The notes under the pieces are model-generated. The model saw only the letters and a program-made list of their open reading frames with translations, was not told the origin of the DNA and ran no database searches. Below, piece by piece: positions 13,106 through 63,539 of a DNA stretch of 64,000 bases. Positions within the stretch are counted from its first letter, which is position 1. The number at the start of each line of letters is the position of its first letter. This DNA comes from Pocillopora damicornis. Taxonomy: Eukaryota. Where the stretch lies: positions 186,001-250,000 of the forward strand of contig NW_020847654.1 in the NCBI RefSeq assembly GCF_003704095.1, written 5' to 3'. Position numbers and translations under genes: made by a program.

Positions 13106-16100
13106 ATGAAAATTCTCAGCGCATTTGTAGGATTCTTGTCAATCCTAGCAAATGGTTGTTTTGTTGAAGGTAAATCCAAGTGAGTGATAGCCACTGTCAA
13201 AGCGACAGCACTGCTGCAATGAAAGCATTGCTTAGTCTTGTTTGAGTATTATGGATCATTTTATTCTCTTGTTGATGTCGTAAACTTCGCCATTCTTTAT
13301 TCATCTTCGACTTCATCTATTTAATTGCTCATGTGGGTAGTTAGACGCCTCCTGATAGTCAATCATCGATGCTATCAAAAAAAATGGTTGTTTCACTACG
13401 ACAAAGTTGATTTCAATCACCGCTGAGACCTCTCTGTCATATTTTTGTCACGGAAAAACTCAGTGGACTATATCATCTTGCAATATCCCGTATATTGACA
13501 ACAACACTTGGTTGTGTTGAAAGGAGGCTAACTATGTTCACATCATGTGAAACTTTCAACGATAAAAAGAAACAACAACCCCAAACGGGTTACCGCAGAG
13601 TAAACAAGTTATTTTGTCGCTGGTTGCCGGTGCACAAATCGGCTCAGTAGTAATTCCAAATATAATCTGTCTTGAAACATGTCATTATTCATTAACAGTT
13701 GAAATATGCAAGTCAGTACATTTAAATTAGCCGCGTTCTTCTCACACCTCCGCTATAGAGACGGAATTTCGCTTGAAATAACTGATTAGCCAGTATCTTT
13801 TGTATTCAAAATTAATATTAGGTTTGTAATTTGAAGGCAAAGTCGAAAATATCAACCGTGGGCGTCACGGTCCGTGATAAGCCTAACATGTAATTCCGCA
13901 TGTTATGGATTGGAAAATCACAAGGTTGTCACAAGGAAATTTTGGTCACATCCACATTTGTTCATATTTGTCAGCAGAAACTATGTACAGTTGTAAATTA
14001 AGAACAGATTTTGTCAAATGTCAACTTAAATTCTGCCCACTACAAAAATACAAAAAAGATTACCAAATCCTTAGTGATAGAATCAGAAACCACTGTCAGC
14101 CATACTTGGTACAGTGAGTTTGTTTGGGAAATAATGAAAATGCAAAACCATCGGCATGCTCGTTGGCTTATCTAAAACAGTTTAGAAAGTTGAAACTGAA
14201 CATCTGTACTTGTAAATAAACATAGATCCTTACTTAGAGATCCTTGCAATGATTCCTCGCGCAACTTCGAACATATAAACATTTGCAAGTATTTCACACA
14301 TTATTCAAAGATTACGAATTCTGAGTTTACTAAAATCGCTTTGGTATTTTTCAGGATTCTTTACAAAACCAATCAAATGTGCAGCTAGGAAAGTAGTGAC
14401 TCCTATAGATGCCCCACGCCATCAGTACTATCCCTTCTTCGTCAGTGTTTACCGATGTAGTGGAGGCTGCTCTACCAACTCACCTAATACGTACCACTGC
14501 TCCGCCACAACCTGGAACAATGTAACTGGAACTGTATTTGATTTGCAAACTAGCACCCAAAAGGTTCTGACGGTTCTAAATCATACCAGTTGTGAGTGTA
14601 CATGCGTAGCGAAGGCTAAAGATTGCTCTGAAAACGAACTTTACAACGAAGATACATGTAGTTGTCAATGTAAATACCAGGATGAACCTCAAGTAGGATG
14701 TCCCGCGAGATTCAGGTGCGTATTACTTCATCTTAACCGTGCAAGGATTTGTTTACTGGCCAGTGCCGACGAAATTGCCCATATGGTTGGGAAAACCCCG
14801 AAAGGCTTTCGATTTTTGTTGACACGGAATATTTAGTACAGCGGTTACATATTTGGACCCATGTTAGAAATTCACAAGTGTGATTCTCCCGTATATTTTT
14901 GTTCCCCATAGTATTTTGGATGAGCCGTCTTCGAATGTGAATCTTTCTTGTTTCTTAGCGATTCGAAAAGCTTTTGTAAGAGTTTCGGTTTCTGGAAAGA
15001 CTTATGTCATGCGAGTTTGCATATTCTGTTAAAGCCGGAGATAGAATTGTATGATGATGATAAAAAGCTAGAGTGTAATTATCGAACTAAGCTTCCTCAG
15101 TTTTTCCGATTTTCGACATTTTCACATCCAAAAATCCGCCTCTTATCAGGCTTATACATTCAAAGGAGTTCTGTGATGAATTCCGTAAAGCTTCTGGAAA
15201 CGTTAAATGCGATACCTTCTTGAAAACCCTCACTTAGAGATTTACTTGTGGGCCGAAACAAAATCTATGCCTTGCCCAATGTAATACTATAAGCATGGGA
15301 ATCGGTAAAATTTGGAGTAATTTTTTTCTATAGTTGGAGTCAGTTCCAGTGCAAGTGTGTTTGTGCAAGGCCAGTAGAATTTTGTCCTGTCAACATGGTA
15401 AGTGCAATTTCTGACATTGACGATCCTTTGTTGTTGTTGTTGTTTCTTATAAAAGCTGAAAAAGAGACAAGAATGGATCGCAGTGATGTGTAAACAGCAT
15501 TATGGCGAGTTTTAAGAGCTTGCAAAAAGGTACCCCTAGTCCTTCTCTCTTCCCCATTCTACTGTCAAATCACTTCCACGGGGGTTTACCCTTCTGTATC
15601 GTTACACATGTAAGGTTGAGCTCCCAGGATTTCCCAGCCAGTGAGGGATTATCCATCCTGGTCTCAGTCAGTTAAGTTTCACTTCACAGTACAGTCGTCA
15701 TCAGGAAGTTATCATTCGCAGACGGGTGCTTTCCATAAAGCGAGTCATAGAGTTTACAGCAAATATCACTCTGATCATAACTGAATTTCCGGTGCCTCTG
15801 ATGCGCGGTGGGTCTCTTATTTTATGAGAAAACCTCCGAGTTCATATCAGAACATTCAAACATTGAGTGTGTGTGTCTGTAAAGCGGGGATGCGCCTTTT
15901 TTTCCTCCACTACCATTAACTTCCTGTCCACTGTTCCTCAGGAGTGGAGTTACACAGCGTGTGGTTGCGTTTGTACTCGGTCTGTTGTGGAATTTTGTAA
16001 ATTGGAGAAAAAAGTCCTCAACGCCTCAACTTGTGAGTGCGAAGAACCTAAAACAATAGTGAAAAATTTAAATCCTGGTGTCCCTGGCAAAAGAACTGGT

Positions 16101-17765
16101 AAGTATTAAACTGAAAAAGATAATATGTGTAAGCTTGGCTTTTAATACGAAAGGTGTACCATCTGCGCAGGCACGTTTAGAATGGGCAAACGGAGCCTGC
16201 CTTCTTTCTCATTTTTCTATGTTTGTTTCATTTTTTTTCTTATTTTTGTTTTGCTTTAAATTTTGCCTTTTAATTAATTTTCTTTGGAGTGATAGTTAAG
16301 CTGTTGATGGTATGGGTGAGGTATCATGAAAAACCGGTTGAGGCTTGTATCAACAGGAGATACGTTACCATTATTAGTGAAATGCGACCAAGGATTTACG
16401 CCTTAAACTGCAGCCATGCAAAACTCGCTTTGTCAGTTAATTAATCGATCTCAAATTCAATTTTAGCCGAAGTAGTAAACCTGTTTTTGATCACTTTTCC
16501 GAAAAAAAAAGTCCGGCTTATTGACCTGGGATTGAAATTGATGAACTGAAAAATGATCGTGGGCACTTAGTTGTTGTATCGAGTTGCTGTCAAGTTGGTA
16601 CACACGAGATAATCGTATGGAAGGTCCTATGGTTTCCTTTCTAGGGTCCTCTGATTGAAATTCCTCATTTCTTAGCCTGTAGGACAGTTTCTTCTAAATT
16701 GTACTCGAAAAGTCCAATCGTCGGCATTGCTTACCCCTATTTTCCTTAAACACAACAGATTTCGGTCTCTTCCTTTTTCAGTGGAGACAACGAATTGGAA
16801 GCAGTTTGTGTTATTTATGGTTGGAGAGTTTGTCGTTTTAATTCTCCTGTTTGACTTGGTCATATACTGTAAATACGGGGGTGGAATTATCTGCAAAGCC
16901 TGTCGCTGTCCTCGTAAAGGTAAAATCTCAAAAAATTACTTCTCTCTTTTAGTCCTATCCCACATAAAAATAATTCATATAATCCACGATCATAACATTA
17001 ATATTTTGACTCCATTAACCAAATGTAATAGTGCAATTTTAAGCAACAGCGACTTCCTATTAAAAAATCTTTTGCTTTCCTCTTAATTGAAATCGGTCCA
17101 AATCTCAGTATCGGTGATATTTCTCCATTAACAAACCTATGTGAAGTGACCAGTTTGTTTGCATATCGAAATTAACTTCACTACATCCTTTTAGCGCAAT
17201 GGAAACCTGAGTGACTATGACGTGGGAAAATAGTGAATATTTGCATGTTGTTATTTACCTTGACTTTCTCTCAGCAAAACGAGCACTGTGATTGGTTGTT
17301 TCTTGTTCACGTGTCACTGATCAAATTCAAATGTACCCGATCGGGATACAATAGCGCAGTTGTTGCCCGCGCGCCGAATACAATAGCATGTTTTTGCCTC
17401 ATGATTGTTTAAGGGAAAGTCTAAATACATAACAAACCAATTAATGTATGTTCCCTCGGGAAACTAGTTAGTTTTGTTTTCCCTCGAGTCCTGATGTTTC
17501 CCTCAACCTCGTCTCGGAAGCATCAGGACTCTGAGGAAAGTAAAACTAACTGTTTCCCTCGGGACCATACATTAAGTGTGTATTGTTTTTCTCTTTAGAA
17601 AGGAGGATGAATCAGATGTCTTGGTACAACTAAGATCGATTTATTTCCATCTCTTGCTTCACAGATACTTCAAATAATGGTCAAGCAGTCGTTAATCGTG
17701 GAACTTCAACTGGACTTAATGCAAGTAAAGATAATAGTCCTACAATTGGTAATAAGTTTCTATAA
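13106..17765 (+). CDS. Membrane-anchored PDGF/VEGF-domain protein 1 (about 294 aa); exons 13106..13169, 14355..14715, 15334..15397, 15942..16098, 16782..16919, 17665..17765
   Basis: Signal peptide MKILSAFVGFLSILANGCFVEG; VEGF-like core C..YYPFFVSVYRCSGGC..C..NHTSCEC; CX10CXCXC repeats; TM FVLFMVGEFVVLILLFDLVIY. Junctions are in frame and total 885 nt. The exact 3' end is less certain because there is a possible extra donor near 17748. Confidence 0.88.
17270..17584. repeat. Non-autonomous interspersed repeat with a long internal hairpin, in the last intron of VEGF-like gene 1
   Basis: Imperfect inverted repeat: aatgtatgttccctcgggaaac-tagttagttttgttttccctcgagtcctgatg ... catcaggactctgaggaaagtaaaactaactgtttccctcgggaccatacatt. 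Outer boundaries are approximate. Confidence 0.6.
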
Positions 17766-20382: not shown

Positions 20383-20482
20383 NNNNNNNNNNNNNNNNNN
20401 NNNNNNNNNNNNNNNNNNNNNNNNNNNNNNNNNNNNNNNNNNNNNNNNNNNNNNNNNNNNNNNNNNNNNNNNNNNNNNNNNN
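20383..20482. other. Assembly gap (100 N)
   Basis: N run. Confidence 1.
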
Positions 20483-20589: not shown

Positions 20590-22728
20590 TCGCCCAATGT
20601 AAGGTAATCCGGATTCCGGAATCCAGGAAATTTTTGGTCGTGGAATCCGGAATACTGGGCATTGGAATCCAAAATCCAGCTTTTGGAATCCAGAATCCCG
20701 CTAAAGAATGAATCCAGAATCCATTAAAATCGTATAGACGGCTTTCACGCGCATTCATGCATCCACGGTCATGCTAAGATGAAGACTGCAGACCATGCAG
20801 ACCGCGCTTTGTTCGCTAGAGAATTTCGACTGTTACAGCTCGCGAGAAACTGACAAATTCATTAATGACCTATCACCCAATCGACTTCGATACCGACATA
20901 GCCAAAGTTCCCTACTCAGTAACTATCGATCAGTCTTCTACACCGATTCAAAAACCTTCCTAGTAAAGTTCGATTTTAGTTTGCAGCACTTTCTTTACTG
21001 TAAAGCTCTTTGGGCTGTCTTGTGAAGATCCAGGTAATCCTTACCTCTAAGTCAGCGTCACGGTCCACACAAATTACATCTTGCCGCGTGGGGCTAATCT
21101 GCACGAGCTCGAGAAACTTGACCCCGCAATTTTGTCTTGCTAGATAACGCGAGCTCGAAAGAACCTCGTAAAATTTCCTCATGTGATGTCCAAAAATTGG
21201 AAACTGTCGCAACGTTACCGAAAGAGTAAGAAAATGGTGTATACACCTTAATCATATGTAAAAAACATTTTTAAAAAAGCAAACAAAAAAGTTGCACAGT
21301 CTGCACGGTCTGCACAGTCTGCATGGTCTGCAGTCTGCGTTTTATCATGACCAATGCAACCACTGTAGAGTGCAGGTCACTCACGTGGTCGATGGGTGTG
21401 TAAATTTAGAGGGACTAAAGAGATTGTTTACGTAATAACAGCATTCAAATCCCACAGGATATGCTTGGATTCCAACATAGCGACAGACCACACGTTACCA
21501 ATTACGATAAACTTTGAATAAAGATATATCTGAATACTAATAAAGACGGGAGAGGTCTATTTCTAGGTCAAAATTTCGACATTTAAACATAAACCGCTTT
21601 CTGTAATATTTGACATTCGGAATAACAAAATTTAAGATTTCATAAGGCACCATATCTCAGTACAAATAAAGTAAGATACAACCAGATTTTAGGGTCAAAC
21701 AGGAAAGAATCATTAGAATCATTGCTCTGGAGAAATCATGGCCGACGTAATGTGATTTGACTTGGCTAACCTCATAAAGAGAAAAGAAATTGTAGAAAAG
21801 CGAATCTCTCATTCTTGGAAAATTACCGTGTAAATGCAGATCTTTTGCGATTTTGCAAAGGTTTAAGTACAGTTGAGTTGGTTGAACACCGTTTTATGCG
21901 CAATCTCATAACGTCGAACATCATCGCCAATTACATATAGGAAAACAAGCTTTTCTTGGTCATAGTCTGCGATTTATTTGCGACATACACGGGGTGTTAT
22001 TAAAATTATATTTCAGTTTAAATTTTTCGTTACTACTATGGTTTTTGTTTAAAAGGAAAGTTAAAAAAGTAATTTGAGATGATAGGGAAATATTTTCGAG
22101 TTGTTTTGTTGACAGTTCTCCATAAAGTCAATTTTGGATTACAAAAATTGGCCACCTTTTCCCAGTCAGAAAATATTATGCTTTGCTAAAACAACTTGTT
22201 AGTCCAACAGTTATTTAAAAATTAAAAATGATAAGCAATGATTTGAACTATTAGTTCTTTTGATTCCGCTAAATCAGTTGAAGAACCTGGAGCAACCTGA
22301 ATGAAAGAAATATGGTACACCTCTTCAGAGTTGCTAAAAAGATGTAAAATGAATGGACATTGGACCTAGCAGACAGACAGTCTCAATAGGTATTCTTAGA
22401 AGAAAAATTTATGCCTTGATTTGCTGTAATATATTTCTTGTAATTAATAAACTTTTTTATGTAAAGATGACTATACAAACATGCATTCACACAACATGTC
22501 CTTCAATAACGAAATCGCCATTGAAGTCATTCCTAGAAGACGAAATGCAAAAATTAGGAGCAAACCAGAAAGTAAAATCTGGAATCTTTTATGTTTTGGA
22601 ATCCGGAATCTGCACAGGTAGAATCCGGAATCCAACATCTGGAATCCGGAATCCAACATCTGGAATCCGGAATCCATAGCTTGGAATCCAGAATCTAATA
22701 CTGTCCTGGATTACCTTGCATGGGGCGA
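20590..22728 (+). mobile_element. Complete 2.1-kb non-autonomous TIR DNA transposon with GGAATCC subterminal repeats and 6-bp TSD GAGCAA
   Basis: Left end TCGCCCAATGTAAGGTAATCC, right end GGATTACCTTGCATGGGGCGA; GAGCAA at 20584..20589 and 22729..22734; no transposase ORF. Confidence 0.9.
20766..21353. mobile_element. Nested TIR element (GCAGAC/GTCTGC subterminal repeats) inside the 2.1-kb element
   Basis: Ends ggtcatgctaagatgaagactgcagaccatgcagac / gtctgcatggtctgcagtctgcgttttatcatgacc; flanks atgcatcca / atgcaacca resemble a 9-bp TSD with one mismatch. Confidence 0.7.
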
Positions 22729-38417: not shown

Positions 38418-38424
38418 GGGGCTT

Positions 38425-42340: not shown

Positions 42341-45300
42341 ATGTTGCTGGTCATTTCCATCTTTGTATTTGAACTACTGGATGTAACTTTGTCGGCCCAG
42401 AAAGGGGAAAGTAAGTTTCAAAGTCAGATTTTAACAGTTTCGTGGCTGTGCAGGTTTGAGAAAGTAGCCGATCTTAACGATCAACACTTAATCAAAGGGA
42501 TCATCAGTCGTCATAAATTAAATCTTAATACTCCGGCCGTAAAACATATTCTCTGTGGGAAGTAATCAGCTCTTCTCGTGGCTTTTACGCCAAAATCCCT
42601 CTCTGCCGTTACTCGGTATTTCCACTTTACCAACAATCGTGGCTAAGCTCGACTACGCGGGGTAGGTTTTTTGAGAAGATGAACTGCCGCGAGGTAAAAA
42701 CCATCAACAGACTGTATCCCACTTTTTCAATGAAAAGTGAGTGTTAATCTCCTTTTAAAGTTTAACAGATCAAACGCACATGCATTGTTAAATACTTGTT
42801 GTTGAAGGGAAATAGTCTGTGTTTTTGTGACCCGCAGAACTCTTATTTACCTCGTTAGATTTCTATCCACTGTTCAATTCTACGTGACATCATCTTAATT
42901 GCGGATATCCTGGATCCCAGACCTCACTTCCCATCTTAGCCATAATAACTTCAATAACGACGACAATGATAATTTCAGCTTTATTTCCTCTCTTCCTCTC
43001 TCTCAGGGTTGACAAATGTTCTCTGTCAAACGCACGAGACCGTTATTCCCGTAGATTCAACTGATCATGGCTTTTACCCTTTCTATGTGAAGCTTCATCG
43101 CTGTGCTGGCTCAGTGGGCACAGTGTCTCCCAAAGTGCAACATTGTGTGGCACAAAGTTACGAGGAAATAAACGTCCCAGTGTATTCGCGTGCAGCAAAC
43201 TTTCGCCGGACGACCGTCACCATGAAAAATCACACCAGCTGCGCTCCTGAATGTGTAGCCAGTCCGCTTGACTGTGATTTGGCAGTACAGGACTGGGACG
43301 ATAATTTATGCGCATGCAAATGCAAGTATCCTGACGGACCACCTAAGGAACTCACTTGCAAAGAAGGATTTAGGTACGAACCGGACCTTGAGAATCGCAA
43401 TGGAAGCTTAAAAAACGTTTTACTTTCCCTTTAATGGTTTGTCCTTGCTGGAATATATTTACATGTTATCTTAGGAGATCGTTAGGGACATATTTAACTG
43501 CAGAGAGATGGACGGTAAAAATGTACGACCAAAAAATTAAATTACTCGTCAGCCACTTAACCATCCATATTTTTGGGTTATTAATTTTTTCGGTGTTTAC
43601 TTTTTGAATTTCTTTCAGGTGGAACAAATATAAATGCGCATGCGAATGTGACCGAGCACCTGAGCACTGTCCCATCAGAATGGTAAGGCATTCTTCATAA
43701 CCGCCGAATTTTAAGAATTTCACAATTAATGGAAGGAAAATACAAATTTAGAAAATATTCAACGTTCGAATGACGCACTCTCTGCAGTAAGTTGTCTCCC
43801 TATGCCACCTAAATTACAAGTCAAAACCAATTTTCGCAAGATTCAGATCTTAGAAGACTTTTTAATCGATTGGGAGTCTTTCCACTGCGTAAATATAAAA
43901 CTGCTCAACGATTCTCTGCTCGACTGTGACAAAAAAAAATTTCTATGTTTTTCTGAAGAAAGTCTTAAATGAATGAAAATGTATGTACAAAATGTACCAT
44001 GTAGAAGAACAGTATTTGACAGCTTGATATTACATTCCTCTCACGGGTTTTAATCATTACACATTCTTTTTCATAACTGGTTCTTCATCTGAAGCGCATC
44101 ATGATTCTTTTTGTTTTGTACAGACTTGGAGCAAAGACATCTGCGGTTGCAAATGTGAGAGCAGTGCAGTAAATGACTGCATACAAATGGAATTGGGAAT
44201 TGACGTTGATTGCCAGTGCGTGGATGTGAAGGCGTTCCGCAGACATAAAGCAGGTAAACACGTATCTCTAAAATGAGTTTATCTCTAATTTGATGCTAAC
44301 ACGATGCACTGACATTTGGTGAACCGCTGGAGTCCAAGACGAGGCTCTAGCCTAGGAAAAGTCCTTCTCCACCCAGAGGTATAAAATGGTATTTAAAGCT
44401 GCTGTAGTTTGTTTGCAATGGAATTCACATTGACAAAAAAGCTTGGGGCAATTTGGGGGAAAAAACATGGAATTATAATTTGTAGTCTATAATCTCAAGC
44501 ACGGGCATATTCAGGACGCTATGTTATTAAATCATCTTTAAAGACCATTTCTTTTATCAGAAAGAAATGTGATACATTTTTTTTTTGATTATCGAACATT
44601 TTTTCATTTTAAATTTCACCTTTTCACATTTTTCTTCTGTGCTTCTCCCAATGCACGTGAACACCCTTCACGCTTGCCTCGCGTTTGCCTCCGTTCGCCT
44701 GAAAAACACAAAAGTGATACCCCTGTTCAGCAGGTTAGGAGGCACATTTTGTCACGCGTTTAGCACAACATTTTGGTTAAGGCAGCCCCCAATTTAAGAC
44801 TGTACTTATGAATTCATTCCCTGTCTGATTTCTTTTGGAAATATTTTACTTTAATTTGGCAAGCCGTTATTCCCCTGAAATGTTACCAGCTTTTAATTTT
44901 TTTTTCTAAAAGTATTTGTTTTTTCCTGCAGTTTACTCTCGAAACCGGATGTTTATAACACTTCTGATAGGTCAAGCAGTCATCATCATACTCCTCATTT
45001 GTGCTCTGGTACACTGGGTACGAAAGAGAAACCGAAACAGCTCGGCCAACGCTCCGCTCGACGGATCAGACCCAGGAAAGACGAATGATGAAGTTGCTTC
45101 TCAATGTAAGTATCTTGAAGAATATGAGGAGTTTTTCTGGATACAAAATAGGGATCATATCCAAATCTTATCCGAGAATCAGGGATGGTCGCTGCTTAGG
45201 AGGTATCAAAGGTGGGGGGGGGGAGAACTAGGAGGAACTGATGGACGCAAAGGATTTAAGTTATGCAAGAAATATCATCGATCTGCTTTCTTAAATACAA

Positions 45301-45454
45301 GCTATATTAATAATATTATCGTTATTTATAAAACCTTTCAGACCTAAAGATGGCTGCTAATTCTGCCGAGTCCTTAGAGGGTGCGAAGGATTCAAGTGAC
45401 GACGATAGCTGCACTGCTCCTTTGTCCCCCAAAGTACGAGTTACAAACATCTAA
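42341..45454 (+). CDS. Membrane-anchored PDGF/VEGF-domain protein 2 (about 305 aa); exons 42341..42410, 43007..43373, 43619..43682, 44124..44253, 44932..45105, 45342..45454
   Basis: Signal peptide MLLVISIFVFELLDVTLSA; core C..FYPFYVKLHRCAGSV..C..NHTSCAPEC; CXCXC repeats; TM MFITLLIGQAVIIILLICALVHWV followed by RKR; tail ending VRVTNI; 918 nt in frame. Confidence 0.9.
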
Positions 45455-45485: not shown

Positions 45486-45612
45486 GACGATATGCCACAG
45501 AAGAAACAAAAGAGAAACATCCACAGAAAGACAAGGTGAAGCGTAATGGGGACGATATGCCACAGAAGAAACAAAAGAGAAACATCCACATAAAGAAGGA
45601 TGAAGTGTAATG
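45486..45612 (+). repeat. Tandem duplication (65-bp unit, two copies) in the 3' UTR of gene 2
   Basis: gacgatatgccacagaagaaacaaaagagaaacatccac at 45486 and 45551. Confidence 0.9.
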
Positions 45613-46168
45613 ACCCATTCGACCCTAATATAACAATAAAACTATAGGATGTGCTCAGTAGTTAATCTCGATGTCGAGATTAAAATCTTTTATGATAGAT
45701 AGTGAGCTGATATGCTCTCCTCACCTTATTTGCGCAGGTACAGAGCTGAACTTATATGTAACTGACCAAATTTGAAAAAGCTGAACTATTTCGCTGAGAT
45801 CGCTTAGAGGCGATTTTTTATATATAAAAGTCAATAACATGAAGGCAGATGTTTTTTCTCTGTCTATGAAATGAGGAGTGTACTCTTAAATAATATATTT
45901 CAACAACAAATACAATTTAATCCCCCCAAATTGGAGGCAGAGAGAGTAGTGTTAATAACACGTAATATTTGCTTGCCTTTGCTCATTTATTTGCTAGGAT
46001 CTGTCCCTTTCTTGTACCCAATGTACTCAGTAAAACGTGGTAAGTTAAACCAATTTTTGATTAGTAGGGTTCAAGTTGTCACTAGCCTCTATTTTCAATG
46101 TGCTAAATTAGACGTCGACAAACATCAGTTTAAGCAGCTTCTATGAAGAAGAAAATTTTAATCCGCAT

Positions 46169-46378
46169 TTAACTCTTTATCCCCTAGCATCAGTATCCCT
46201 ATTCTCCATACCATTCACTATACATTTATCAAGGTGCTGACAAAGAGAATTTGTTTAATAATCAAGAGCTGCTCTAGTTGGTGATCATTTCCTCTATTCT
46301 CATGACCTTAATGTTTGTTTCAAGGGTGATATGGTAGGAGAGATTAGATGCTAATCACTCTGAGGGTAGAAAGGTCAA
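46169..46378. mobile_element. MITE-like repeat of about 210 bp
   Basis: Degenerate inverted termini ttaactcttt / aaaggtcaa; diverged inverted copy at 51279..51484. Confidence 0.7.
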
Positions 46379-48745: not shown

Positions 48746-51700
48746 ATGATGCAGTTTTCAATTTGGACAATTGTTCTTCTTTTATCCCAAGCCGCATTTC
48801 AATGTACCGGTGAGTAAATTGCCAAGTGTCGATTCTCACACATAGCTTGACTGTTTCATTCTCAAAATCCCAATACTTAATGATTAAGTCTGCACCTGTG
48901 GTGATGTAATGAAGCTATTTGTGATAGATGCACCGTTTTCGTTCATTCATTTATTCATTCCTCGTCACCAACGCCAGATTCATAAAACTACTATCGACCG
49001 CTAAATTCCGGTTTGATTCCTGGTTACAGCATATGTAACAAACAATGAAATACTACTGTATTGGGAATATGTAGATAAAAATGAAAAAGAAAAAGCAGTC
49101 AAAGTGTTAGGAAGTTACTTTAAAAGCTACCGGCTATCGGGGAAAACCCTAAGTCACCGAGTTTACGTCCTGTCTGAATTTTTCTCAGCAACCAAGAGAA
49201 GGTTTATGTAAAAAAGTCACCAATTCTATCATACAATATATTTTCTTTATCTAGAGGCTCTAGAAAAATAAGTAAGGTCAAACATCCACGCATCAAGCTC
49301 AAAACTTTCTTCGATCAAGACAAACACAAAGTGGGGCGTTTACTTTCGCTTTCTGATTTCATTCATCGAAAGATCCCTCAACCGGTAATAACCCTTCATG
49401 GACGAGTCCCTTGAGAAATTTCGATCAAGACATGTGATCAGGTTCTGCTGGGCTGATCGTGTTATTTAATGGAGATACGGGGCGGGGGAGGAAGATCAAG
49501 ACATTTTGCATTACCGTTCGATTGTGTTCATTTTCAGCGGCTGTCAAACCTGTTGCTGTTGAGTGCAATCCACCAGTCCTCTCGACTGTGGCAGTGGACG
49601 AACCGCACCACAGATATTATCCATATTTCATACGACTCCATCGGTGCGAGGGCTCGTACGGGTACGAAAGCCCCAACATCAAGAAATGTGTGGTCACAGA
49701 GAGTAGGGAGGTTACATTTTCGGTCTATGATACTACCAATAGACTATCGACACAAATAAGACTCCAGAATCACACGAAATGTGGCCCTGAGTGCAAGGCA
49801 AGTCCTCTCGATTGTGATTTAAAAGTGCAGGAATGGAACGACAAAAGCTGCCAATGCAAATGTTTATATCCACGTTCGCCTCCGCCTGACGATGTCGTGA
49901 AACCAAAAAAGGGCTTTGGGTGAGTGATTTTACCACAAAAAAGTCAGTGGAGAGAGAGAAGCATCTGTTAATTTCAGATTTTATTGTGCTTCTCAGACCC
50001 CTAGCCCAACAAGCTCTGCCTCTGCAATCATTTGTTTGCATTTCAGTTAGGACACACTTAGAAGCCTATCGGTAGATTAAATGAAAATTTTATTTCTGTG
50101 ACATTTTTCCATTCTTCTAGGTGGAATAACCATCTCTGTCGATATGAATGCAACACACATGAACGTTGTCCGCTTGAAAAGGTAATAAGGTGGTGAATTG
50201 ACTAGTATTTCCATTATTTCACAATGTTAAATGGGTCATGCAACACTTACACGAGTTATTGGTAAAGCAAAATCTTGGTCACTCTACCCACAAGGATTGT
50301 TACACAGGAGGAATTAGTTTAAAGTTTAAATACTTTTTTGGGAGTACACATTAAACCAATTATTAAATGAATAAATGAAGAATAGTCAGTTGCAAACTGG
50401 AAGCCAAAATCCTTTTAAAACAGCCCACACCTATAATCAATTATTACGGGTTAACAACTGAGATGAACATGAAATGGAAAGGGAAATAAATAAGGGAGTA
50501 CTTGACTAAAATTTACTTGTGTAGTTTGTACTTGAATGGGTTATTACTAACTGACTGATTGATTGAAGTAACCTAAAAATATATTATTTTTGTTGTGCTT
50601 CACACAGATGTGGAATAAGAAGAAATGTTCCTGTGTTTGCACATCATTTTATGAACATCATTGTAAGGCTGAAAACAAGTTGATGGATCCTAAAACATGT
50701 GCATGTAAAGATCCAATGAAATCAACAGCACCACGACCTGGTAAGTGAAAATAGGGCCAGCTTATAGTTGGAATGGAGAAATAATGTCTTCTTGAAGGGA
50801 CTAGGGGTTGGTTTGGATAGTATCTTCTATACATACCTATGAAAATATTTCCTTCTGGAAGATCTTTACTTTCAATGGACCTCACATTACCATAAAAGAT
50901 TGGGGCAATTTCAGAAAATAGTGTCTGAAATATGAGGAGTTGAGGTCATGGCCCCCTTCCACCCCTTCCTACCACCCTTAACAACTCTGCTCATCCATCC
51001 TAGGGCTTAACATTGTCAATGGTTTTATAGATCTATGAAAGAAACCAAAGTTGTGGGAATTCTTGCTTATTCATGATTTGTGATGGAAGTTTTTTATTTC
51101 TTACAGGGTTCATGACCTATGTGGAATCCAAAGTCCTTGCTGTTTTTCTTGCTCTTGCAATAGTAGTGATTTTATGTTTAATTACCTACCTTTGGTACCG
51201 CTCAGCTTATCCCAAATATCCATTTGGATCCTCTGGAAAACTGAATGAGTCAACCAGTAGTGCTGGTATGGTTAATTATTAACTCTTCAATCCCTTAGAG
51301 TGACTGGCATCGAATTTCTCCTCAAAGTATCACCATTAAAATCAAACATGAAGGTCGTGAGGAAAAAGGAAATGATCACCAATTTTGAAGCTTTTTATGA
51401 TCAAACAAATTTTCCTTGTCAGTACCAGAGGAAATAGAACAGTATGGAGAATATAGATATCAATGTTAGGGGGGTATAGGGTTATGGAATGGAGCTGACA
51501 CCTCAAATTTGAGGTTGCTCTATTATTACTAAATCTCTTCATTTCTCTATCTAATTTCTTGTTGTTTCCTTGTGCTTTCACTTCACTGACATCATTAATC
51601 AATATGTACCACGATCACTGTTTTTAAGCCTACATACAATGATAATATAATCATATCGTGATTCCATTTCCTCTCATTAACTTACTGACTGATAATCATT

Positions 51701-51774
51701 CTTTTTATTTACTTGCAGAATCTGTTGGTCAGAGCTGTGAAAATGCTGGTGTTAGGGTTGAAACACAAGTCTAA
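48746..51774 (+). CDS. Membrane-anchored PDGF/VEGF-domain protein 3 (about 284 aa); exons 48746..48809, 49538..49919, 50121..50181, 50608..50740, 51107..51265, 51719..51774
   Basis: Signal peptide MMQFSIWTIVLLLSQAAFQCTA; core C..YYPYFIRLHRCEGSY..C..NHTKCGPEC; CXCXC repeats; TM VLAVFLALAIVVILCLITYLWY; tail ending VETQV; 855 nt in frame. Confidence 0.9.
51279..51484. mobile_element. MITE-like repeat of about 205 bp in the last intron of gene 3
   Basis: Reverse-complement similarity to 46169..46378 (tatggagaata, aaatgatcaccaa and aaacaaattttccttgtcag blocks). Confidence 0.7.
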
Positions 51775-54700: not shown

Positions 54701-54807
54701 TGTACAAAATGTCCATTGCAATTTTGAACGCATATGATTCTCTTACCTTACTTCTGACACCTCTTTGCAGAGATTGCATTAATCAGACAAGGAAACAACG
54801 ACAAAAC

Positions 54808-57163
54808 ATGCAAGAATCAATCGGTATAATCCTTCTCCTTCCACTACTGGGACATGCAGGTACTTATGTGAAAATCTTGTTCTCGACTCTTTAGTCCACT
54901 AGCTCCGCCATCTACAATGAGGGCAGCTTTCCAATGATTTCCACTGTTTCAAGAAAGTAGCCACTTCCTAAACCAAATTTAATATAACTTTATGAACGCG
55001 ACTGACCTTTTCACCACACAATTTAAGTAGACTCAAGAGAATATAAAATGATATACTCTTGGTAGACTTCTATAATATAGAATTTTTCCAATTAAGATTA
55101 CTAAATAATCATAGGATCTAAGAGCCTAAGGGTGAAGAAGGAAAGATTTGTTATAAGGTGAAGACAAGAGATGGAAAATTTAGGTGAAGAATGGTGCCCT
55201 AAAGGTGAAAATCGCATCTATTAAAAGTAAGGGTTGACATGAGGTAGAGAAGACATCGGCAGAATTTGACTGTTTGAGGATGGAACAATAAAAGAAAGTT
55301 AATGTTAGTTGCCAAGGCAATAATTAACTATTATGTATCAAGGTATTGAAATTAGCTTTTTGTTTACTCCTAGTTCGCTTAGGCAACGAACTCTGCAGAC
55401 CACGACCGACTTTAGTGCCTATAGACGATCCAGAATTCAAATTTTTCCCCTACTTTGTGAAGCTTCATCAATGCGGCGGATCATGTGACCATATTCAACC
55501 TTCGGTAAAATCATGCATTCCACTTGAGTACGATGAAGTGTCTGTCACTGTGCAAGTGGTAGGTACCGATGAAATGCGGACTACACAAGTGAAAAATCAC
55601 ACGCGTTGTGGATGTGAATGCGTCCACGGCCCGAAAGATTGTGACTTGGAATTAGAGGAATGGAAACCAGACCTATGTCAGTGCCAGTGCAGAAACAGAG
55701 ACAGACCATCGGTTCCGTGTGGGGCAGGAATGACTTGGAGTAGAGCTCAGTGTCGATGTGTGTGCAATAAGCAGCCTCAATCCTGTGGTCCAAATAAGGT
55801 AATATCATAGAGAATTTCTGTTGAGTTGGAAGAAATTCGGGAATTTGATACTTGTGAAATATTCATTGCTCTAAATAATGAAGCCGAAATATTTGACACA
55901 TATTTTACAGAGACGCATAGGTAAGACAGTACGTAAAGCCGCGAAGTAAAAACTTAGTTTGTACGGGTGTACAAATTCATGATGAGCTTAAAATTCCATT
56001 TAATTTTTCCTTTTTCAGGTATGGAATAAAGAAGCTTGTGGATGTGTTTGCAAAGATAGAAGGTATAAAAACTGTGCCAGGAAACAAAAGCGAGTGGATG
56101 AAGAGACTTGTAAGTGCACTACGAAAGTGATGCCTCCAGCAGTAGGAAAACAGTCATCTCCCAAACCTCACTCAAAAGGTAAGTAAATTTGTTAAAGTAG
56201 TGCCTTCTTTAAGAGAGAGTGCATAAAAATCTGACAAAAAAGGTTCAGAAAACTTACTCGAATGTTTCTGGCAAAATTCTTCATTCATCTCAAACCCTTG
56301 CAAGTAATACCCCTCTTCCCCTCATCCCTCAAACCCGCGCCCCCTACCCCTACCCCCTTGCCCCTTCCCCGCATATTCCTGAGTTAAAAAGGTTGAATTT
56401 AAAGGACTAATCCTTGTAAGTAATTAAGGTTGAATAACTTTGTTATATAACAATTTTTCATTTCAGGTGGACTTCGCCAAGAGTTTTACGTGATATTATT
56501 CATAGGACAGTTTGTCTTGTTGTATATGGTTTTTGAAGCGGTCCTTTATCGTAAGAAAGCTGGTTTAATATATCGCATCACACGGAGCTGCTCAACAAAA
56601 GGTAAATTTTATCGACTCTCTTTAATTTTTTCTGCGTTTTTAGAACGGTGGATAAAAATGTAAAGATATACAAACTGTACGGAATTCAAAGACCAAAGTT
56701 AGAATCTCCGACCATTACTGAAAATGGAAACTATATGATGCTTTAATACCGAAGGTTTGGAATTGAGAATGAATGAGTTAATTATACAAATTACACAAAC
56801 CCTTTTCGAGTAGATTTTTTTTTAACTTTGTTTGCTGTATGACTCGTTGTAATACCCTGTAAGCCACACCTTTTTCGGCTATATATTCCTACTCCAACCA
56901 AATAAAGCCGGTGCAAATTAATCCGATTTCGAACTGGACATAATCTCCTTTATCACCAAATGTGAGTTTTCTTCTGGTCTACCCGTGCGGCCCGTTAATA
57001 ACCGTGTCGGTCGTTCTTTTCGTCAGGCGGTCATTTGGACATCAAGGAGTCAAGAGAAGACATTCTCAGCGTATCAAGCAGTGAGACGGAAACAAATCTA
57101 CCCACAGAAACAGGACACCACAATGTAGAGGCCTCTATCAAAGAAAGCCAAGCTGTCGTGTAA
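54808..57163 (+). CDS. Membrane-anchored PDGF/VEGF-domain protein 4 (about 302 aa); exons 54808..54859, 55374..55798, 56019..56178, 56467..56601, 57027..57163
   Basis: Signal peptide MQESIGIILLLPLLGHA; core CRPRPTLV..FFPYFVKLHQCGGSC..CIP..NHTRCGCEC; CXCXC repeats; TM FYVILFIGQFVLLYMVFEAVLY followed by RKK; tail ending SQAVV; 909 nt in frame. Confidence 0.9.
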
Positions 57164-60100
57164 ATTGGATGCCGGGAAATCTTTAAACATCTTGCGACGA
57201 AGTCCATCTCTATGCTTAAGATAAGCAAGGATAAGCATGGAATGATATTTTAAGCCAGAGATCAATTTTATCAAACATTTCAATCAGTCGGTAGTATTTT
57301 CGATGGCTCCGAGATAAATGTCTAAATATACGTATTGCTTACATGTGAGATGAAGTGTAGAAAATATTTCCCTCGAGATGTTTGACCTCCTTTAAAGCTG
57401 TATTAGATATTTTCCTATCTATATACCTATTAATAATTTATTTATTTATTTATTTATTTATTTATTTTTTCATGTATTTGTATCAGCAAGTAATAATATA
57501 TGGAAAAGAAGACAAGAAGCTGCAGACTACTGAACTTTGATTATTAATAGTAAATAATATTTATTTCAGTTGAGAAGATTTTAAGAAGTAAAGAAAAGTA
57601 TTTTATTTCATTCATCTATCTTTAGTTATTTATACTTAGTATCCTCCACTGATTAAAAGATATTTCTAGAGAATTTCTTTCAACGTCAATACATCTGCAC
57701 CATTGACTATCCCTAAGGCATTCAGTTGACCGGATACGCATAGCAGCTTTTTAAGCCTGGAAGGAATCTTTCACTTTTAATATCATCCCTTTTCGGCTGC
57801 TTTCAATTGCAGTTATCGTTTGAAAAACTTGTTTAACTGTCCTTGTTTAAGAAAAAAGAAAAAGAAACTGATGTAAGTCACCAGTTACACTGAATATCTG
57901 ATCTCTAAGGGGGTGAGGGTGGGGTTAGTATTTTTAGTGTTCATCACGGTACAGTAAAATAGAAGAGAAGAACAGAAGGTGTTCTTCACTGAATTTTACC
58001 GAGAAAAACATTTATGACTGGGTTCTTAGAGGTTTAGGGCTAAAGCGGGCGTTGTAGTTCATTCAACATAATTACAAATAAAAGGCTGGCTTTAACGGAG
58101 ATCGGATGGAGACTGGATAAGAACCGGGAAGGAAATCAGGCGCTATCCCATTTATTTTCCCTTTTAACATATCCATTTGGTATCATAATGGTACAAATTT
58201 TAAATAAATTTTTATAGCCAGTTGAGAAGAGCGATTACAAGTGAATAAATCTTTTTCCACTGTTTTTCCAATTATGAAAATTTCCCGTGGCCACAAGTAA
58301 TAAAGATAACGGTTATAAAAATACGAAAGTGCCATCATTGCTATTTACCTCCCAGCAAGAGAATCTCCCATCTCAGGAGACGTTGCCATGTGTACCATCC
58401 CTGATTACCTTCAACTGATAAGCGTACTTGCTTCATGAGGCGGATCGATATGACCTTGTGATCAGTGGTTAGAAACCGGAAACAACCAAAACATGTCGAT
58501 AAGAGGGATCACGAAAGATTAAAATGATCACACACGTATTTGCCAGTATATATTAAAGGATTATCTCCTTTGCTTTTCTTAAATCTAAAAATAAATTTCA
58601 GGTGATGGAACAATTCTCTTTTTTTTTTTTTTTTTTTTTAGAGAGAGACTTTCCCTTCGTGAAAAATCAGGAATTTCCCATTTAAAAAGACTACACGGGC
58701 TACACACACGTCCAACTGCTTTTGAAATTTCAAGAAATCTTTCCTCGTAAATGTTTTGTAGGGCAGCCGTATTTCAAGGGAATCCTGTCAATAAGGAAGT
58801 AAAAAATAAATTAGCGATAACAGCTTAACCCAAGAAGCCTATTATAAGCTAATTGAAAACAGGAAAATAAACCTACGCGTGAAAACCATGCGGGGGTTCT
58901 GTTTTAGGGACTCGCGTGTTTTTTTCCGGCCGCCCGACAATGATCTAGAACAATGAAAGAGAACAAAAAGAAAAAGAGAATAAACAAGCGAAAAGAAAAA
59001 TTGATTCCTCCCGAACAGAATAAATGAGAAGGCGAAACAGAACCTGAAACTTCAGCAAATCAAATACAAACTTAAGACTGACCTTGTAATGCCTTAGAAC
59101 CTCACAAGCTTCCCATTTCGCTCACATATTTCGTCACGGAGTTTTGTATTTCATCCACTGAATGCCGCCTTGATAAGCCACTGTTAGTTATTAGGGTTTT
59201 GCATAATGCCACTCCTTGTCAACATTTTTCCCAAATTTATGACAAATATGAAGGCGTAACGAGAAAACGGATATTCATGAAATTCCGTCTCTGTAAATTG
59301 ATTGATATAAGTTAACGATCCGCGAAATATCGTTATAACATAAACGATCAAACCGACACCGATTTTAAACTCGTATACAAGAACCAAAAACACTAAACTA
59401 GCAAGGAAATCTCCTAGGCAAGGCTTCACAACAAATCAGAATTTGACCAAAAAGAAAAAACCTACAAAATATCTTTCAAGTTAGCTAAGGTAAGAACATT
59501 ATTTTTATTGAGGTCAGGAATTGAACATGTAAACTAGGTAACACTTGCTAAGCGATAATTTTAGCGTTAATTGTGTCGCATTCCAAGTCAAACCTTTAAT
59601 GATTATCAACCTTGTTAGCAAGTTGTATAACCTCGTCCTCGATAACGCTTTAGAGGTGACTTTTCAAAAAAAAAAAATTGATAACTCCAATAGCTGGAAA
59701 TACTTTGCATGCGGATATCTGAAGGATTACGCAAATCTATTTTTCATTATATCACTGACCCAGTTCACACTTGCTCAGTTGTGAAATTTTGCTGTCCCTC
59801 CGACGACGCTTTATTAAGTGACATCTTGATTCTAATCATCAATGAGATTACGGAATCAAGCGAATTCATCAGATGCATGCATAAGTATATTATCGATGTC
59901 AGGCAAGAATTGATAAGACGATCGGAAGAGAATGACTACGCCGGTCTCATTAATCTAAAACCAGCCACGCAACGATTTTAAAACTGGCTTAGTCATTCTT
60001 GCGCGATCATAGATCAATACTAAGGCTAATAAAAAACTCAATAACTTTTGTACTTGAAGTTATGATGTACTTATGCTCTTGAAGATATGATATTGTGGTT

Positions 60101-61377: not shown

Positions 61378-63539
61378 ATGTGCAATAATTGCCTTACGTT
61401 GTCCCAAAAATCTTGGTTGTATGTCTTCGTAGGAGCCACGCTAACCTTAGCATCAGGTGAGTAAACACGTTTAAAAATTTACTACGGGAATTACTACAAC
61501 TTCCACGTGTAGCGACGAACTGTTCTCGGTGGAGTAACGATTTCTTCAAATTTCTTATAGAAATCTAACAAAACTTTCACCAAAATATATCGGTTTTAAA
61601 ACATCTGTTAAGTTGATACTTCTTTGACAACAAGAGCTGTTGCAATTTTCTCGAGTTTGGTTGCTATTCATTCAAGCCTGTTTCCGTCCGATAAATTGTA
61701 TCGTTAAATTTACAAGGGTTTCTCTTAGTGAAAGTGCAATTGAAAGCTATTCCACTCAAGAATTTTTGTTTCTCGATCGTACGATTCTCTTAGGAGGAAA
61801 CCTTTCGTGTTTTAAGAAGCTTGTAACATCGGCTTTGCGCTTGAAAGTGTTTGAGATTGATTAATTGAAATCAATAGCATTTCTGAAAAACTTTTAGTTG
61901 TATTATTTTGTAGATAGATCTTTCACAGAGAATAATGATTTGTCTCTTCCTTGCGCCTCTGAGTAGAGCAAGCCAAGTTTCCTGCGGCCGGCCTCGGTCA
62001 TTTTTGAAAGACGCTGGAGTGTAGGAAATACCGCGAAAATGTGCGATGTAAACGCGATCACTGAGATTTATTACAATTTTTCGTGATCTTAAATGTGGCA
62101 ACGAAATTGTAGCGATAACGTGGGCCGACTCGCACTAATTTTCACAAACTGAGAGATTGTGCTTACGAAATCACTTTTGATTTACACTAACAATGCAAGT
62201 CGCAAAATGCGCGGAATTTGCCACCTTTAATTGAAATTTATTTATGTACAAAACAGTTGCTCTGGCGTTTGTTTTGTGGTTCTTAAAACACCTTCATTAA
62301 AAGATATCCCAGCCGTTTCAAACAAATGCTTTGGGCATTGCATCCTCCTTACATATCAAGACCAAAAGGTATCAAATTTTCTACTCTCGAAAGATCTAAG
62401 AGTACTTTTTAAATCAGATCGGCTTCACTATGTAAACAATCATGTTGGCCACCGCTTCGAAATTAATTTTTGTAGCAAGTGATATTTGTTCCTCCCTTGC
62501 AACCACCAAAGTTAATTTACATACCGCTGGCTTTCCCTCTTCCGTTCAGTTGTAACTTTTTATATGTTAAAAGTTTATCAAAGTCCTCGACTCCTCAAGA
62601 CAAAGGTTACTCCCAAATATGGTTAAATTGCAGAATACCCTGCCACTCATTTACATGTCATTGAATGAGAATAGCGTCTATTGTGTTAGCCTCACGACAC
62701 ATGTAAATGAGGTGTTACTCCCAAAATATTTTCTTTCTTTGCTTTTTATGTACTTGTTAAATATTGTGGTGATTTCCTTCTCTAATTCCCATCATGCTGC
62801 TGTCGTAGAGCATACTAACCTGAGTGTGCTTGCCCAACCTAAGTTAGGTTACCAAAATTCTTTGTGATATTAATTTTAAAGGGCACCAAAATTCGAAAAA
62901 TATCACCAGTCATGACAAACAAACAAACAACTCTAGATAGTAGCTTTGTGATAATTAATTTTATGATGCCTGGACTCTATCGCAATTTTTGAATTGACCA
63001 TCCTGTACTATTGTTTGAATTAAAATATTCTTATTACTAGCAACCTTTATTTATGTTATTCTCTTGTTTACATTTGTTCATACACTCTTCTTTCCTTGAG
63101 TATCATTCTCAAATATATATATTGGCCATGTTTAAGAGTTAATATACTAGTTGTTAATTATAATATTTTAATTCAATCACTTTAGTTCAGGCCTTTGCAA
63201 TACAACTCCAAGAGCAATCATGTAAACCAAGACCAGTAGTGGTGGGTGACCAGACTGAAGGTTTCAAACCATACCACGTGTTACTGCACCGCTGCTCAGG
63301 AACTTGTGATGACATCAACCCAGAACGCAAACCCTGCATACCATCAACCACAGAATTAATTGATGTTAAAGTACATGATCCCTTCAATGGAAATGATAAG
63401 ATCATCAAGGTTCTAAATCACACAAGTTGTGATTGTGAATGCAACCTTGACTGTGATTTGGATAATGGCCAGGTTCCAGATGGAGATCAATGTATCTGCA
63501 AACCTGTATCACAGCCATCTGGGAGGAAACCTGATATAG
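61378..63539 (+). CDS. PDGF/VEGF-domain protein 5, 3'-partial; exons 61378..61456, 63186..63539
   Basis: Signal-like MCNNCLTLSQKSWLYVFVGATLTLASVQA; core CKPRPVVV..FKPYHVLLHRCSGTC..CIP..NHTSCDCEC; one Cys repeat, then a P/S/K stalk and a donor at 63539 (alternative 63543). The rest is presumed to lie beyond the window. Confidence 0.85.

Follow-up and report, generated by a model that had tools for sequence, protein, structure and literature searches.

To our knowledge, every characterised ligand of the PDGF/VEGF/PVF family is secreted. The range of these ligands is tuned by matrix binding or by proteolysis. VEGF-C and VEGF-D are secreted with an N-terminal propeptide, become active when proteases cut on either side of the VEGF domain, and carry a typical N-H-T-(S)-C sequon. 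Here we analyse five neighbouring, co-oriented genes (g1 to g5, + strand) of the coral Pocillopora damicornis, which lie in a 64,000-nucleotide stretch of its genome, referred to as the window (contig C4289:186001-250000 of the assembly searched, which has 234,350,878 bases in 4,393 contigs). Like vertebrate VEGF-C/D, their products combine a cystine-knot domain, in which the N-H-T-(S)-C sequon precedes the last knot cysteines, with C-terminal CX10CXCXC repeats. Unlike in VEGF-C/D, the VEGF domain comes directly after the signal peptide, the interchain cysteines are missing, and a transmembrane (TM) helix and a cytoplasmic tail stand at the end of the protein; propeptides of the VEGF-C/D type on both sides of the domain are not present. 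Instead of the secreted, soluble product that is typical of the PDGF/VEGF family, the mRNAs encode a TM helix and a tail after the ectodomain.

The closest described proteins are found in a survey of 72 cnidarian VEGF-like proteins, including those of P. damicornis, Stylophora, Nematostella and Exaiptasia (Rauniyar et al., 2023; PMC10328876). The survey describes them as VEGF-C-like, with three to five repeats of the Balbiani ring protein 3 (BR3P) type and with interchain cysteines that are often missing (PMC10328876). The coral proteins have the same VEGF homology domain and BR3P repeats, but the domain structure given in the survey stops at the repeats and the anchor is added here. The words transmembrane, cytoplasmic, tethered, juxtacrine and secreted are absent from the text of that paper (PMC10328876). 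A membrane-anchored PDGF/VEGF ligand is not described in the searchable full-text literature either, where the matches to "membrane-bound VEGF" all concern receptors. RefSeq already contains models of the architecture from Pocillopora, Stylophora, Montipora, Actinia, Exaiptasia, Nematostella, Xenia and Rhopilema, with names such as "balbiani ring protein 3-like" and "VEGF-C/D-like". An earlier reading made from the letters of this stretch (the sequence-only reading) knew of no description of the architecture. None is found in the searchable literature, but the databases contain it: the anchor is new relative to the reachable literature, and the family and its gene models are already public. 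Older annotations without the TM exon (Desmophyllum, Stylophora PFX20686 and Nematostella P0032) help to explain why the anchor is not mentioned in the literature.

Balbiani ring protein 3 of Chironomus is a large secreted silk protein with many repeats and with neither a PDGF/VEGF domain nor a TM helix. Only the CX10CXCXC motif is in common with the coral proteins, which have three to four repeats, a VEGF domain before them and a TM helix after them. The name "balbiani ring protein 3-like" is misleading as a functional label, and genuine BR3P matches were treated as false positives in the survey (PMC10328876).

Transcripts join the VEGF exon to the transmembrane exon

Five open reading frames (ORFs) with a PDGF/VEGF domain are found on the + strand of the window (14396-14836, 43009-43434, 49459-49923, 55346-55810 and 63239-63547). 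After each VEGF exon there is an exon that encodes a hydrophobic helix (Kyte-Doolittle peak 2.3-3.05) followed by basic residues. Gene models were built from splice sites and from the conserved intron phases 1-2-0-1-1, and the joined spliced models were used for translation, hydropathy, local pairwise alignment and tree building. Full-length work was done on database proteins that are 97-99.7% identical to the models (P0191, P0242, P0245 and P0246).

The splicing of g2 was read from the RNA contigs of four runs from four studies, placed on 42000-47990. The joints 42410>43007, 43373>43619, 43682>44124, 44253>44932 and 45105>45342 were found in all four runs and are all GT..AG, ambiguous bases being assigned to canonical sites. 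In single RNA contigs of 378 nt the last part of exon 4 is followed by the complete TM exon and by exon 6, and one contig extends from 29 letters upstream of the VEGF exon to ≈196 letters beyond it into the repeat exons. The translation is a protein of 305 aa with a signal peptide, the VEGF domain, the repeats, a helix at residues 217-241, the basic segment VRKRNRN and a tail ending in -TNI. A joint from exon 4 to exon 6, which would skip the TM exon, was not seen in the four RNA runs.

For g4, a transcript contig of 1,938 nt (L015) falls in five blocks of 97-100% identity exactly on the exon model, with 100% over the TM exon, and for g1 a cDNA from a related species (L016) likewise supports the exon model. 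Transcript-derived ORFs agree with the models over 291 of 294 residues for g1 (P0245), 304 of 305 for g2 (P0242) and 297 of 302 for g4 (P0191). The g3 model matches P0246 and the Pocillopora verrucosa protein XP_058942985.2 over ≈276 of 282 residues, last exon included. The mRNAs of g1 to g4 join the VEGF exon to the TM exon. As the TM exon of g5 lies on the same contig just past the end of the window, and g1 to g4 have RNA or transcript support, we take all five genes to be anchored. The TM exon of g1 to g4 runs from phase 1 to phase 1 and is a multiple of three bases long, so skipping it would stay in frame and give a soluble isoform; such an isoform is possible, and none was present in the RNA examined.

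The five-gene cluster of TM-bearing VEGF-like proteins that the sequence-only reading had noticed is thereby confirmed. Its inferred architecture is right and backed by RNA: a signal peptide precedes the VEGF-C-like domain, which is followed by repeats of the BR3P type, a stalk, a single TM helix with a basic stop-transfer, and a cytoplasmic tail. The transcripts of g1 to g4 do not end before the TM exons, as is clear from the RNA joints, from L015 and from the transcript ORFs. A signal exon ending in phase 1 and the N-H-T sequence are common to all five genes, as it had stated. It had counted four anchored genes, which is right for g1 to g4 but too narrow as a limit, g5 being anchored too by an exon outside the window. 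Likewise, it had seen CX10CXCXC repeats in all five genes; these are found in g1 to g4, but g5 has only one degenerate unit.

VEGF domain, cysteines and repeats

The PDGF/VEGF profile PF00341 matches g1 at 6.9e-8 (33.1 bits, with a cut-off of 27), while g5 (9.5e-6, 26.3 bits) and g2 (6.8e-4, 20.3 bits) fall just under the cut-off and g3 and g4 alone are below reporting. A profile of the five trimmed exons matches 37 solved VEGF, PlGF and PDGF chains (1e-7 to 8e-3), with VEGF-E, VEGF-F, VEGF-C, PlGF and VEGF-A at 1e-7 to 1e-5 and PDGF-B also matched, and g4 by itself matches VEGF-E at 1.8e-5. The VEGF domain begins 6-10 residues past the predicted end of the signal peptide. The N-H-T sequence is invariant in g1 to g5 and at least 90% conserved in 54 homologues.

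The six knot cysteines (C26, C57, C61, C68, C102 and C104 of VEGF-A) all align in g1, g4 and g5, and the equivalents of C61 and C104 are lost together, as a pair, in g2 and g3. Both interchain cysteines are gone from g1 to g5, with C51 replaced by F or Y and C60 by S, G or T. They are likewise absent from Drosophila PVF-2, C. elegans PVF-1 and many cnidarian VEGFs (PMC10328876), and their loss is not disqualifying for membership of the PDGF/VEGF family. The repeat region of g1 to g4 consists of three CX10-11CXCXC units and a terminal CX10-11CXC (Pfam CXCXC 1e-4 in exon 4 of g1), that of g5 of one degenerate unit. No dibasic site was found between the VEGF domain and the first repeat.

The structure of P0191, the transcript-derived counterpart of g4, was predicted with AlphaFold2 using 54 homologues. 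The model has a mean predicted local distance difference test score (pLDDT) of 83.5, with values above 95 over residues 20-190, and shows a long helix over residues 217-241, followed by a shorter one at 246-255 and by a tail that is mostly disordered (pLDDT <50). When this model was searched with Foldseek, the first 28 matches were all VEGF, PlGF or PDGF (VEGF-A, VEGF-E, PlGF, VEGF-B, PDGF-B and VEGF-C), the top matches having target-normalised template modelling scores of 0.6-0.69 and root-mean-square deviations of 2.4-3.0 Å over ≈88 columns. Among the fold matches are solved VEGF-A mutants without C51/C60 or without C61/C104 (the C61A/C104A mutant is 1mkk), that is, without the same cysteines that are missing in the coral proteins. 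The predicted model gives the ectodomain a VEGF fold.

Membrane anchor, juxtamembrane segment and tail

Signal peptides and TM helices were called from hydropathy and charge statistics together with the AlphaFold2 helix. Across 68 proteins the mean net charge is +2.3 in the flank right after the TM helix, as opposed to +0.3 over the 10 residues that precede it, which fits an N-out, C-in topology. The predicted signal, single TM helix, positive-inside flank and short tail (25 to 68 residues in the five genes) fit the class of type I membrane-anchored precursors.

The TM helix has the family consensus EFxxxxxxFxxxLY. D or E is found inside 51 of 68 TM cores, and 43 of the 68 have E or Q in the outer half. 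After the helix, a juxtamembrane motif, Y-x-K-K-A-G-x-x-Y, is kept from Nematostella to Pocillopora. Between g4 and Nematostella the identity is 48% in the VEGF domain, 43% in the TM and juxtamembrane segment, 36% in the repeats, 27% in the stalk and 11% in the tail, and between g2 and Stylophora it is 94% in the TM and juxtamembrane segment and 76% in the VEGF domain. Judged from these alignments, the anchor is under constraint, conservation of the TM and juxtamembrane segment being close to that of the VEGF domain.

A C-terminal valine is found in 28 of 63 TM-bearing members, as opposed to 6 of the 87 remaining matches, which are mostly fragmentary (Fisher p = 7e-8), and 20 of the 63 end in S/T-x-hydrophobic. 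Within the cluster g3 ends in -TQV, g4 in -AVV and g2 in -TNI, while g1 (-KFL) and g5 (-EGS) do not fit. In proTGF-alpha, a C-terminal valine in a PDZ-binding motif is needed for the protein to leave the endoplasmic reticulum (ER) efficiently (PMC4907727).

Distribution in Cnidaria and age of the array

The five-exon profile was searched against 1.84 billion representatives, and 1,061 proteins matched at E ≤0.001. A TM helix, recognised by a 19-mer of strong hydrophobicity that lies past the repeats at about residues 210-240, is present in 59 of the 72 matches listed with at least 230 aa, and by this prediction the membrane anchor is the majority state among the long homologues listed. TM-bearing members span Scleractinia, Actiniaria, Ceriantharia, Octocorallia and Scyphozoa. 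They include three Stylophora proteins on one scaffold (XP_022798395, XP_022798398 and XP_022798412), proteins from Oculina and Acropora, a "VEGF-D-like" protein of Montipora, "VEGF-C-like" and "VEGF-D-like" proteins of Actinia, "balbiani ring protein 3" of Exaiptasia, P0200 and P0065 of Nematostella, a "toxin candidate" (P0051) of the tube anemone Ceriantheomorphe, and members from the octocoral Xenia and the scyphozoan Rhopilema. By this search the family, with its anchored design, is pan-cnidarian.

One member, P0071 (362 aa), has the VEGF domain and the TM helix in a single uninterrupted ORF (L014 10001-11089, ENA contig ctg4414); since it is intronless, its architecture is independent of any splicing model. 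Its tail has 131 residues and ends in -VTPV. P0078 and P0266 of the jellyfish Rhopilema are relatives of P0071. A homology search with this long-tailed subfamily (P0071 and P0080) returned no named proteins. A structure-cluster search with P0200 of Nematostella found its own cnidarian cluster and, with low structural scores, arthropod and chordate PDGF/VEGF clusters.

In a quick maximum-likelihood tree with Shimodaira-Hasegawa-like approximate likelihood ratio test (SH-aLRT) supports, whose backbone is weak and whose root is not placed, g1, g2, g4 and g5 each group with their own sea-anemone sequences (SH-aLRT 85, 96, 83 and 95, respectively) and g3 is placed in a scleractinian clade. Nematostella has orthologues of g1, g4 and g5. 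As g1, g2, g4 and g5 each have a sea-anemone orthologue, the array is old, and the "expanded" system of the sequence-only reading does not hold if taken as a recent expansion. Proteins without a TM helix, among them the canonical secreted P0202, group apart in a clade of their own (SH-aLRT 97).

P0202 is a P. verrucosa protein named "balbiani ring protein 3-like", and its orthologue in P. damicornis is a secreted VEGF-C-like gene elsewhere in the genome (contig C3923, 173721-173870). This type of gene resembles the cluster in having a PDGF/VEGF domain and four CXCXC repeats and belongs to the same broad tree, but differs in its long N-propeptide, in the C51-equivalent and the CC pair, which are kept, and in the lack of a TM helix. 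With this gene and the cluster the coral has both classes, and the existence of a separate secreted gene means that the anchored genes are a distinct class and not mis-modelled copies. Further loci with a PDGF/VEGF domain are found on contigs C2891 (143590-153701) and C3439 (588359-589678); the C2891 locus at 143590-143787 (L008) resembles the TM-less P0124, and a second one lies at 153387-153701.

Several database models lack the anchor. Relative to g2, the Stylophora protein PFX20686.1 (P0006), a genome-annotation model of the g2 orthologue, is an exact deletion of the TM exon, which is included both in RefSeq XP_022798412.1 (P0231) and in the transcript ORF P0237 (307 aa) from the same locus. 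In Nematostella, the 2007 model P0032 passes over a TM exon that lies in the DNA of its last intron (L017 6847-6999, DS469859.1) and is 53% identical to the TM exon of Exaiptasia, and the protein looks secreted because this exon was left out of the model. Both skips stay in frame, since the TM exon runs from phase 1 to phase 1 and is a multiple of three. P0006 and P0032 were considered as soluble isoforms and rejected as annotation omissions, the TM exon being found in RefSeq and transcript (P0006) or in the DNA (P0032). In Desmophyllum, model P0003 (209 aa) stops after the first repeats and a separate gene of 111 aa is called downstream.

Gene models and genomic setting

The exons of the five genes are given in Table 1. 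The intron that splits the first repeats in g1 to g3 is absent from exon 2 of g4, and the layout of g5 is the same as that of its 178-aa orthologue P0056. For g1, RefSeq also has an isoform X2 (XP_027059391.1, 282 aa, "balbiani ring protein 3-like isoform X2"), which uses an out-of-frame ATG at 13152 in exon 1, begins with MVVLLKVNP... and has no signal peptide; it is probably a prediction variant.

Table 1. Exons of g1 to g5 in the window, with what they encode and the supporting observations (KD, Kyte-Doolittle peak; UTR, untranslated region).
Gene	Exon	Position	Strand	Encoded feature	Phase and support
g1	1	13106..13169	+	ATG, signal peptide	Phase 1 end; hydrophobic core, donor AAG/GTAAAT
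g1	2	14355..14715	+	PDGF/VEGF domain, first CX10CXCXC unit	Phase 2 end; PF00341 6.9e-8, AG/GT sites, L016 aligns
g1	3	15334..15397	+	CXCXC unit	64 nt, phase 0 end; L016 at 97%
g1	4	15942..16098	+	CXCXC unit, CX11CXC, stalk	Phase 1 end; Pfam CXCXC 1e-4
g1	5	16782..16919	+	TM helix, juxtamembrane	138 nt, phase 1 to 1; KD 2.73; L016 at 16781-16922
g1	6	17665..17765	+	Cytoplasmic tail, stop codon	L016 cDNA
g2	1	42341..42410	+	Signal peptide	Phase 1 end; RNA joint 42410>43007 in 4 runs
g2	2	43007..43373	+	PDGF/VEGF domain (without C61/C104-equivalent pair), first CXCXC unit	RNA joints; PF00341 6.8e-4
g2	3	43619..43682	+	CXCXC unit	64 nt; RNA joints 43373>43619, 43682>44124
g2	4	44124..44253	+	CXCXC unit, stalk	RNA joints
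g2	5	44932..45105	+	TM helix (residues 217-241), basic stop-transfer, tail start	174 nt, phase 1 to 1; KD 2.94
g2	6	45342..45454	+	Tail ending -TNI, stop	3' UTR to ~46270
g3	1	48746..48809	+	Signal peptide	Phase 1 end; N-terminus as in transcript-derived P0246
g3	2	49538..49919	+	PDGF/VEGF domain (without C61/C104-equivalent pair, as g2), first CXCXC unit	
g3	3	50121..50181	+	Degenerate CXCXC unit	
g3	4	50608..50740	+	CXCXC unit, stalk	
g3	5	51107..51265	+	TM helix	159 nt, phase 1 to 1; KD 3.05; matches P0246 and P. verrucosa XP_058942985.2
g3	6	51719..51774	+	Tail ending -ETQV, stop	Confirmed by P0246
g4	1	54808..54859	+	Signal peptide	Phase 1 end; L015 block 54770-54859, 98.9%
g4	2	55374..55798	+	PDGF/VEGF domain, two CXCXC units	L015 99.3%; alignment to VEGF-E and VEGF-A
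g4	3	56019..56178	+	CXCXC unit, stalk	L015 97%
g4	4	56467..56601	+	TM helix, juxtamembrane YRKKAGLIYR	135 nt, phase 1 to 1; L015 100%; AlphaFold2 helix 217-241 in P0191
g4	5	57027..57163	+	Tail ending -QAVV, stop	3' UTR to ~58161; L015 block 57025-58161, 98%
g5	1	61378..61456	+	Signal peptide	Phase 1 end; donor CAG/GTGAGT; peptide resembles P0056 N-terminus
g5	2	63186..63539	+	PDGF/VEGF domain, one degenerate CXC unit, short stalk	PF00341 9.5e-6
g5	TM and tail	64091-64245 (window-equivalent; contig C4289 250091-250245)	+	TM helix, tail	Past window end, read from contig

The window has a eukaryotic composition with ≈38% G+C. Between the last coding base of g1 (17765) and the first of g2 (42341) there is an intergenic stretch of 24.5 kb (17766-42340), which contains all three gaps of N (20383-20482, 25345-25503 and 37689-37788); none of these touches an exon or intron of g1 to g5. 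A sixth VEGF exon was not detectable by exon-wise tblastn in this stretch, which holds the three gaps. It also contains a broken non-long-terminal-repeat retrotransposon (29393-32928, - strand), with RVT_1 pieces of 8e-14 and 1.6e-6 over several ORFs, and two + strand ORFs (22353-22679 and 38062-38488) with a near-identical N-terminal peptide (MDIG.SRQTVSIGILRRKIYALICC...) and GIRNP-type repeats, which look like two copies of a dispersed repeat.

Upstream of the cluster lie the exons of a polycystin-type gene (768-8472, + strand), with a weak PLAT match at 3943-5193 and Polycystin_dom and PKD_channel (4.4e-48) at 7054-8472. Between this gene and g1, a single ORF of 453 aa on the - strand (10384-11745) has an XK-related domain (PF09815, 3.1e-32). 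At 46200-46399 the depth of RNA contigs leaps to ≈6,500-13,900 in each of the four runs, and loose ends are numerous at 46230-46340, which suggests a highly repeated element just downstream of the 3' UTR of g2.

Proposed function and alternative explanations

On balance we favour the view that the five genes encode type I membrane proteins with a VEGF-C-like domain on a repeat stalk, a TM helix and a tail, and that these proteins are membrane-tethered ligands. A rigid stalk of BR3P-type CX10CXCXC repeats would hold the VEGF-C-like cystine-knot domain, and the ligand would be displayed to a receptor tyrosine kinase of the VEGFR/PDGFR type on a touching cell (juxtacrine signalling). Release by cleavage in the variable stalk might occur. 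The sequence-only reading had put forward contact-dependent or bidirectional signalling, or a role as surface receptor, as possible functions. As the two interchain cysteines are missing, dimerisation, if any, would be non-covalent, perhaps aided by the conserved polar TM residue (E or Q), and the C-terminal valine (S/T-x-V) could serve as an ER-export or PDZ-binding signal as in proTGF-alpha.

Membrane-anchored growth-factor precursors are known from other families. Kit ligand and CSF-1 act on PDGFR-class kinases, and together with proTGF-alpha and Gurken they resemble the proposed coral ligands in mechanism, not in ancestry: each is a type I protein that displays a receptor-tyrosine-kinase ligand outside the cell and has a short tail. 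Their folds (EGF-like or four-helix bundle) are unrelated, and shedding and juxtacrine activity have been demonstrated for them and are putative for the coral proteins. Ephrin-B, which is a TM-anchored ligand of receptor tyrosine kinases, has a C-terminus that binds PDZ domains and also signals in reverse. Its fold is likewise unrelated and its tails are highly conserved with phosphotyrosines, whereas the coral tails diverge fast except in the juxtamembrane segment and the last residues.

Several observations weigh against tethered ligands. No VEGFR-like kinase was identified in the genome in a limited search, in which PF07714 gave 130 kinase matches and the two loci inspected look, by their motifs, like DDR-type and FES/FER-type kinases. 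A search of the genome with PF21339 gave no match, but as the controls were also unmatched this says nothing on the presence of a receptor. In the mature protein only ≈6-10 residues precede the first knot cysteine and an N-terminal helix is missing; the N-terminal helix of VEGF-A contributes to its dimer and receptor interface. One knot disulfide is lost in g2 and g3, the tail sequences are poorly conserved between paralogues, and conserved acidic residues in a TM helix are more typical of assembling subunits than of passive anchors.

The anchor could instead serve only for trafficking and regulated release of an obligate precursor, as in proTGF-alpha or neuregulin, with a soluble active form produced by shedding at the stalk or by skipping of the TM exon. 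The stalk between the last repeat and the TM helix is the least conserved extracellular part (27% as opposed to 48% for the VEGF domain) and contains basic pairs in g1 (GKR) and g2 (RRHK and SRNR), both ends of the TM exon are in the same phase (1 to 1), and the C-terminal valine is known from proTGF-alpha, which is shed. Yet a conserved site of the furin type was not found, a joint from exon 4 to exon 6 is missing from the four RNA runs, the two TM-less database models (P0006 and P0032) are annotation omissions, and a disposable anchor leaves the strong conservation of the TM and juxtamembrane segment unexplained; we regard an obligate precursor as unlikely, though worth keeping in view. The proteins might also not be ligands but surface receptors, co-receptors or cis-regulators: their VEGF fold would capture a partner or hold a receptor kinase in cis, and the conserved charged TM helix, together with the juxtamembrane helix and a C-terminus of the PDZ type, would mediate signalling or assembly. 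Such a role is in line with the E/Q and D/E residues within the TM helix (51 of 68 members), with the conserved Y-x-K-K-A-G-x-x-Y motif and the short AlphaFold2 helix at 246-255, with the enriched S/T-x-V C-terminus and with the absence of the N-terminal helix and the interchain cysteines. It is harder to reconcile with an ectodomain that retains the VEGF-C-like sequon and the repeats typical of ligands, and with tails that are short, mostly disordered (pLDDT <50), fast-diverging (11% identity to Nematostella) and devoid of any recognisable signalling domain, and we hold it to be distinctly improbable.

Two further explanations concern the products themselves. The depositor's name "toxin candidate" for the Ceriantheomorphe homologue P0051 and the snake venom VEGF-F among the PDB sequence matches could point to a secreted, venom-type VEGF; as P0051 itself bears a tail of 71 residues after a TM helix at residue 218, and the anchored design is kept in non-venom contexts across the phylum, there is very little to be said for this. 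Alternatively, the TM exons might belong to other genes or result from read-through, the true products ending after the repeats as in Desmophyllum P0003 with its separate 111-aa gene downstream, or as in the TM-less P0006 and P0032. The RNA evidence refutes this reading: the spliced contigs of four studies, the cDNA L015 and dozens of transcript-derived full-length ORFs all speak against it, as do the intronless ORF P0071 and the conserved intron phases 1-2-0-1-1, and we give it practically no credence.

Significance for the VEGF family in Cnidaria

Several public gene models lack the TM exon, and names such as "balbiani ring protein 3-like" and "toxin candidate" mask the nature of these genes. 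If the five coral proteins and their homologues are tethered ligands, a phylum-wide class of membrane VEGF-like proteins would add a juxtacrine, possibly bidirectional, mode of signalling in animals without vasculature, and would bear on the role of the ancestral VEGF system. A bolder and rather doubtful extension is that most cnidarian signalling of the VEGF/PDGF family is contact-dependent and uses ancient type I ligands, with the polar TM residues driving non-covalent dimerisation or assembly with a partner, the PDZ-type C-terminus serving polarised display and, possibly, reverse signalling. Under this extension at least four paralogue lines would predate the split of corals and anemones, and type I ligands would also be found in a scyphozoan. 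If it were true, there would be two ancient modes of signalling, of which freely diffusible VEGF would represent only one and perhaps even the derived one.

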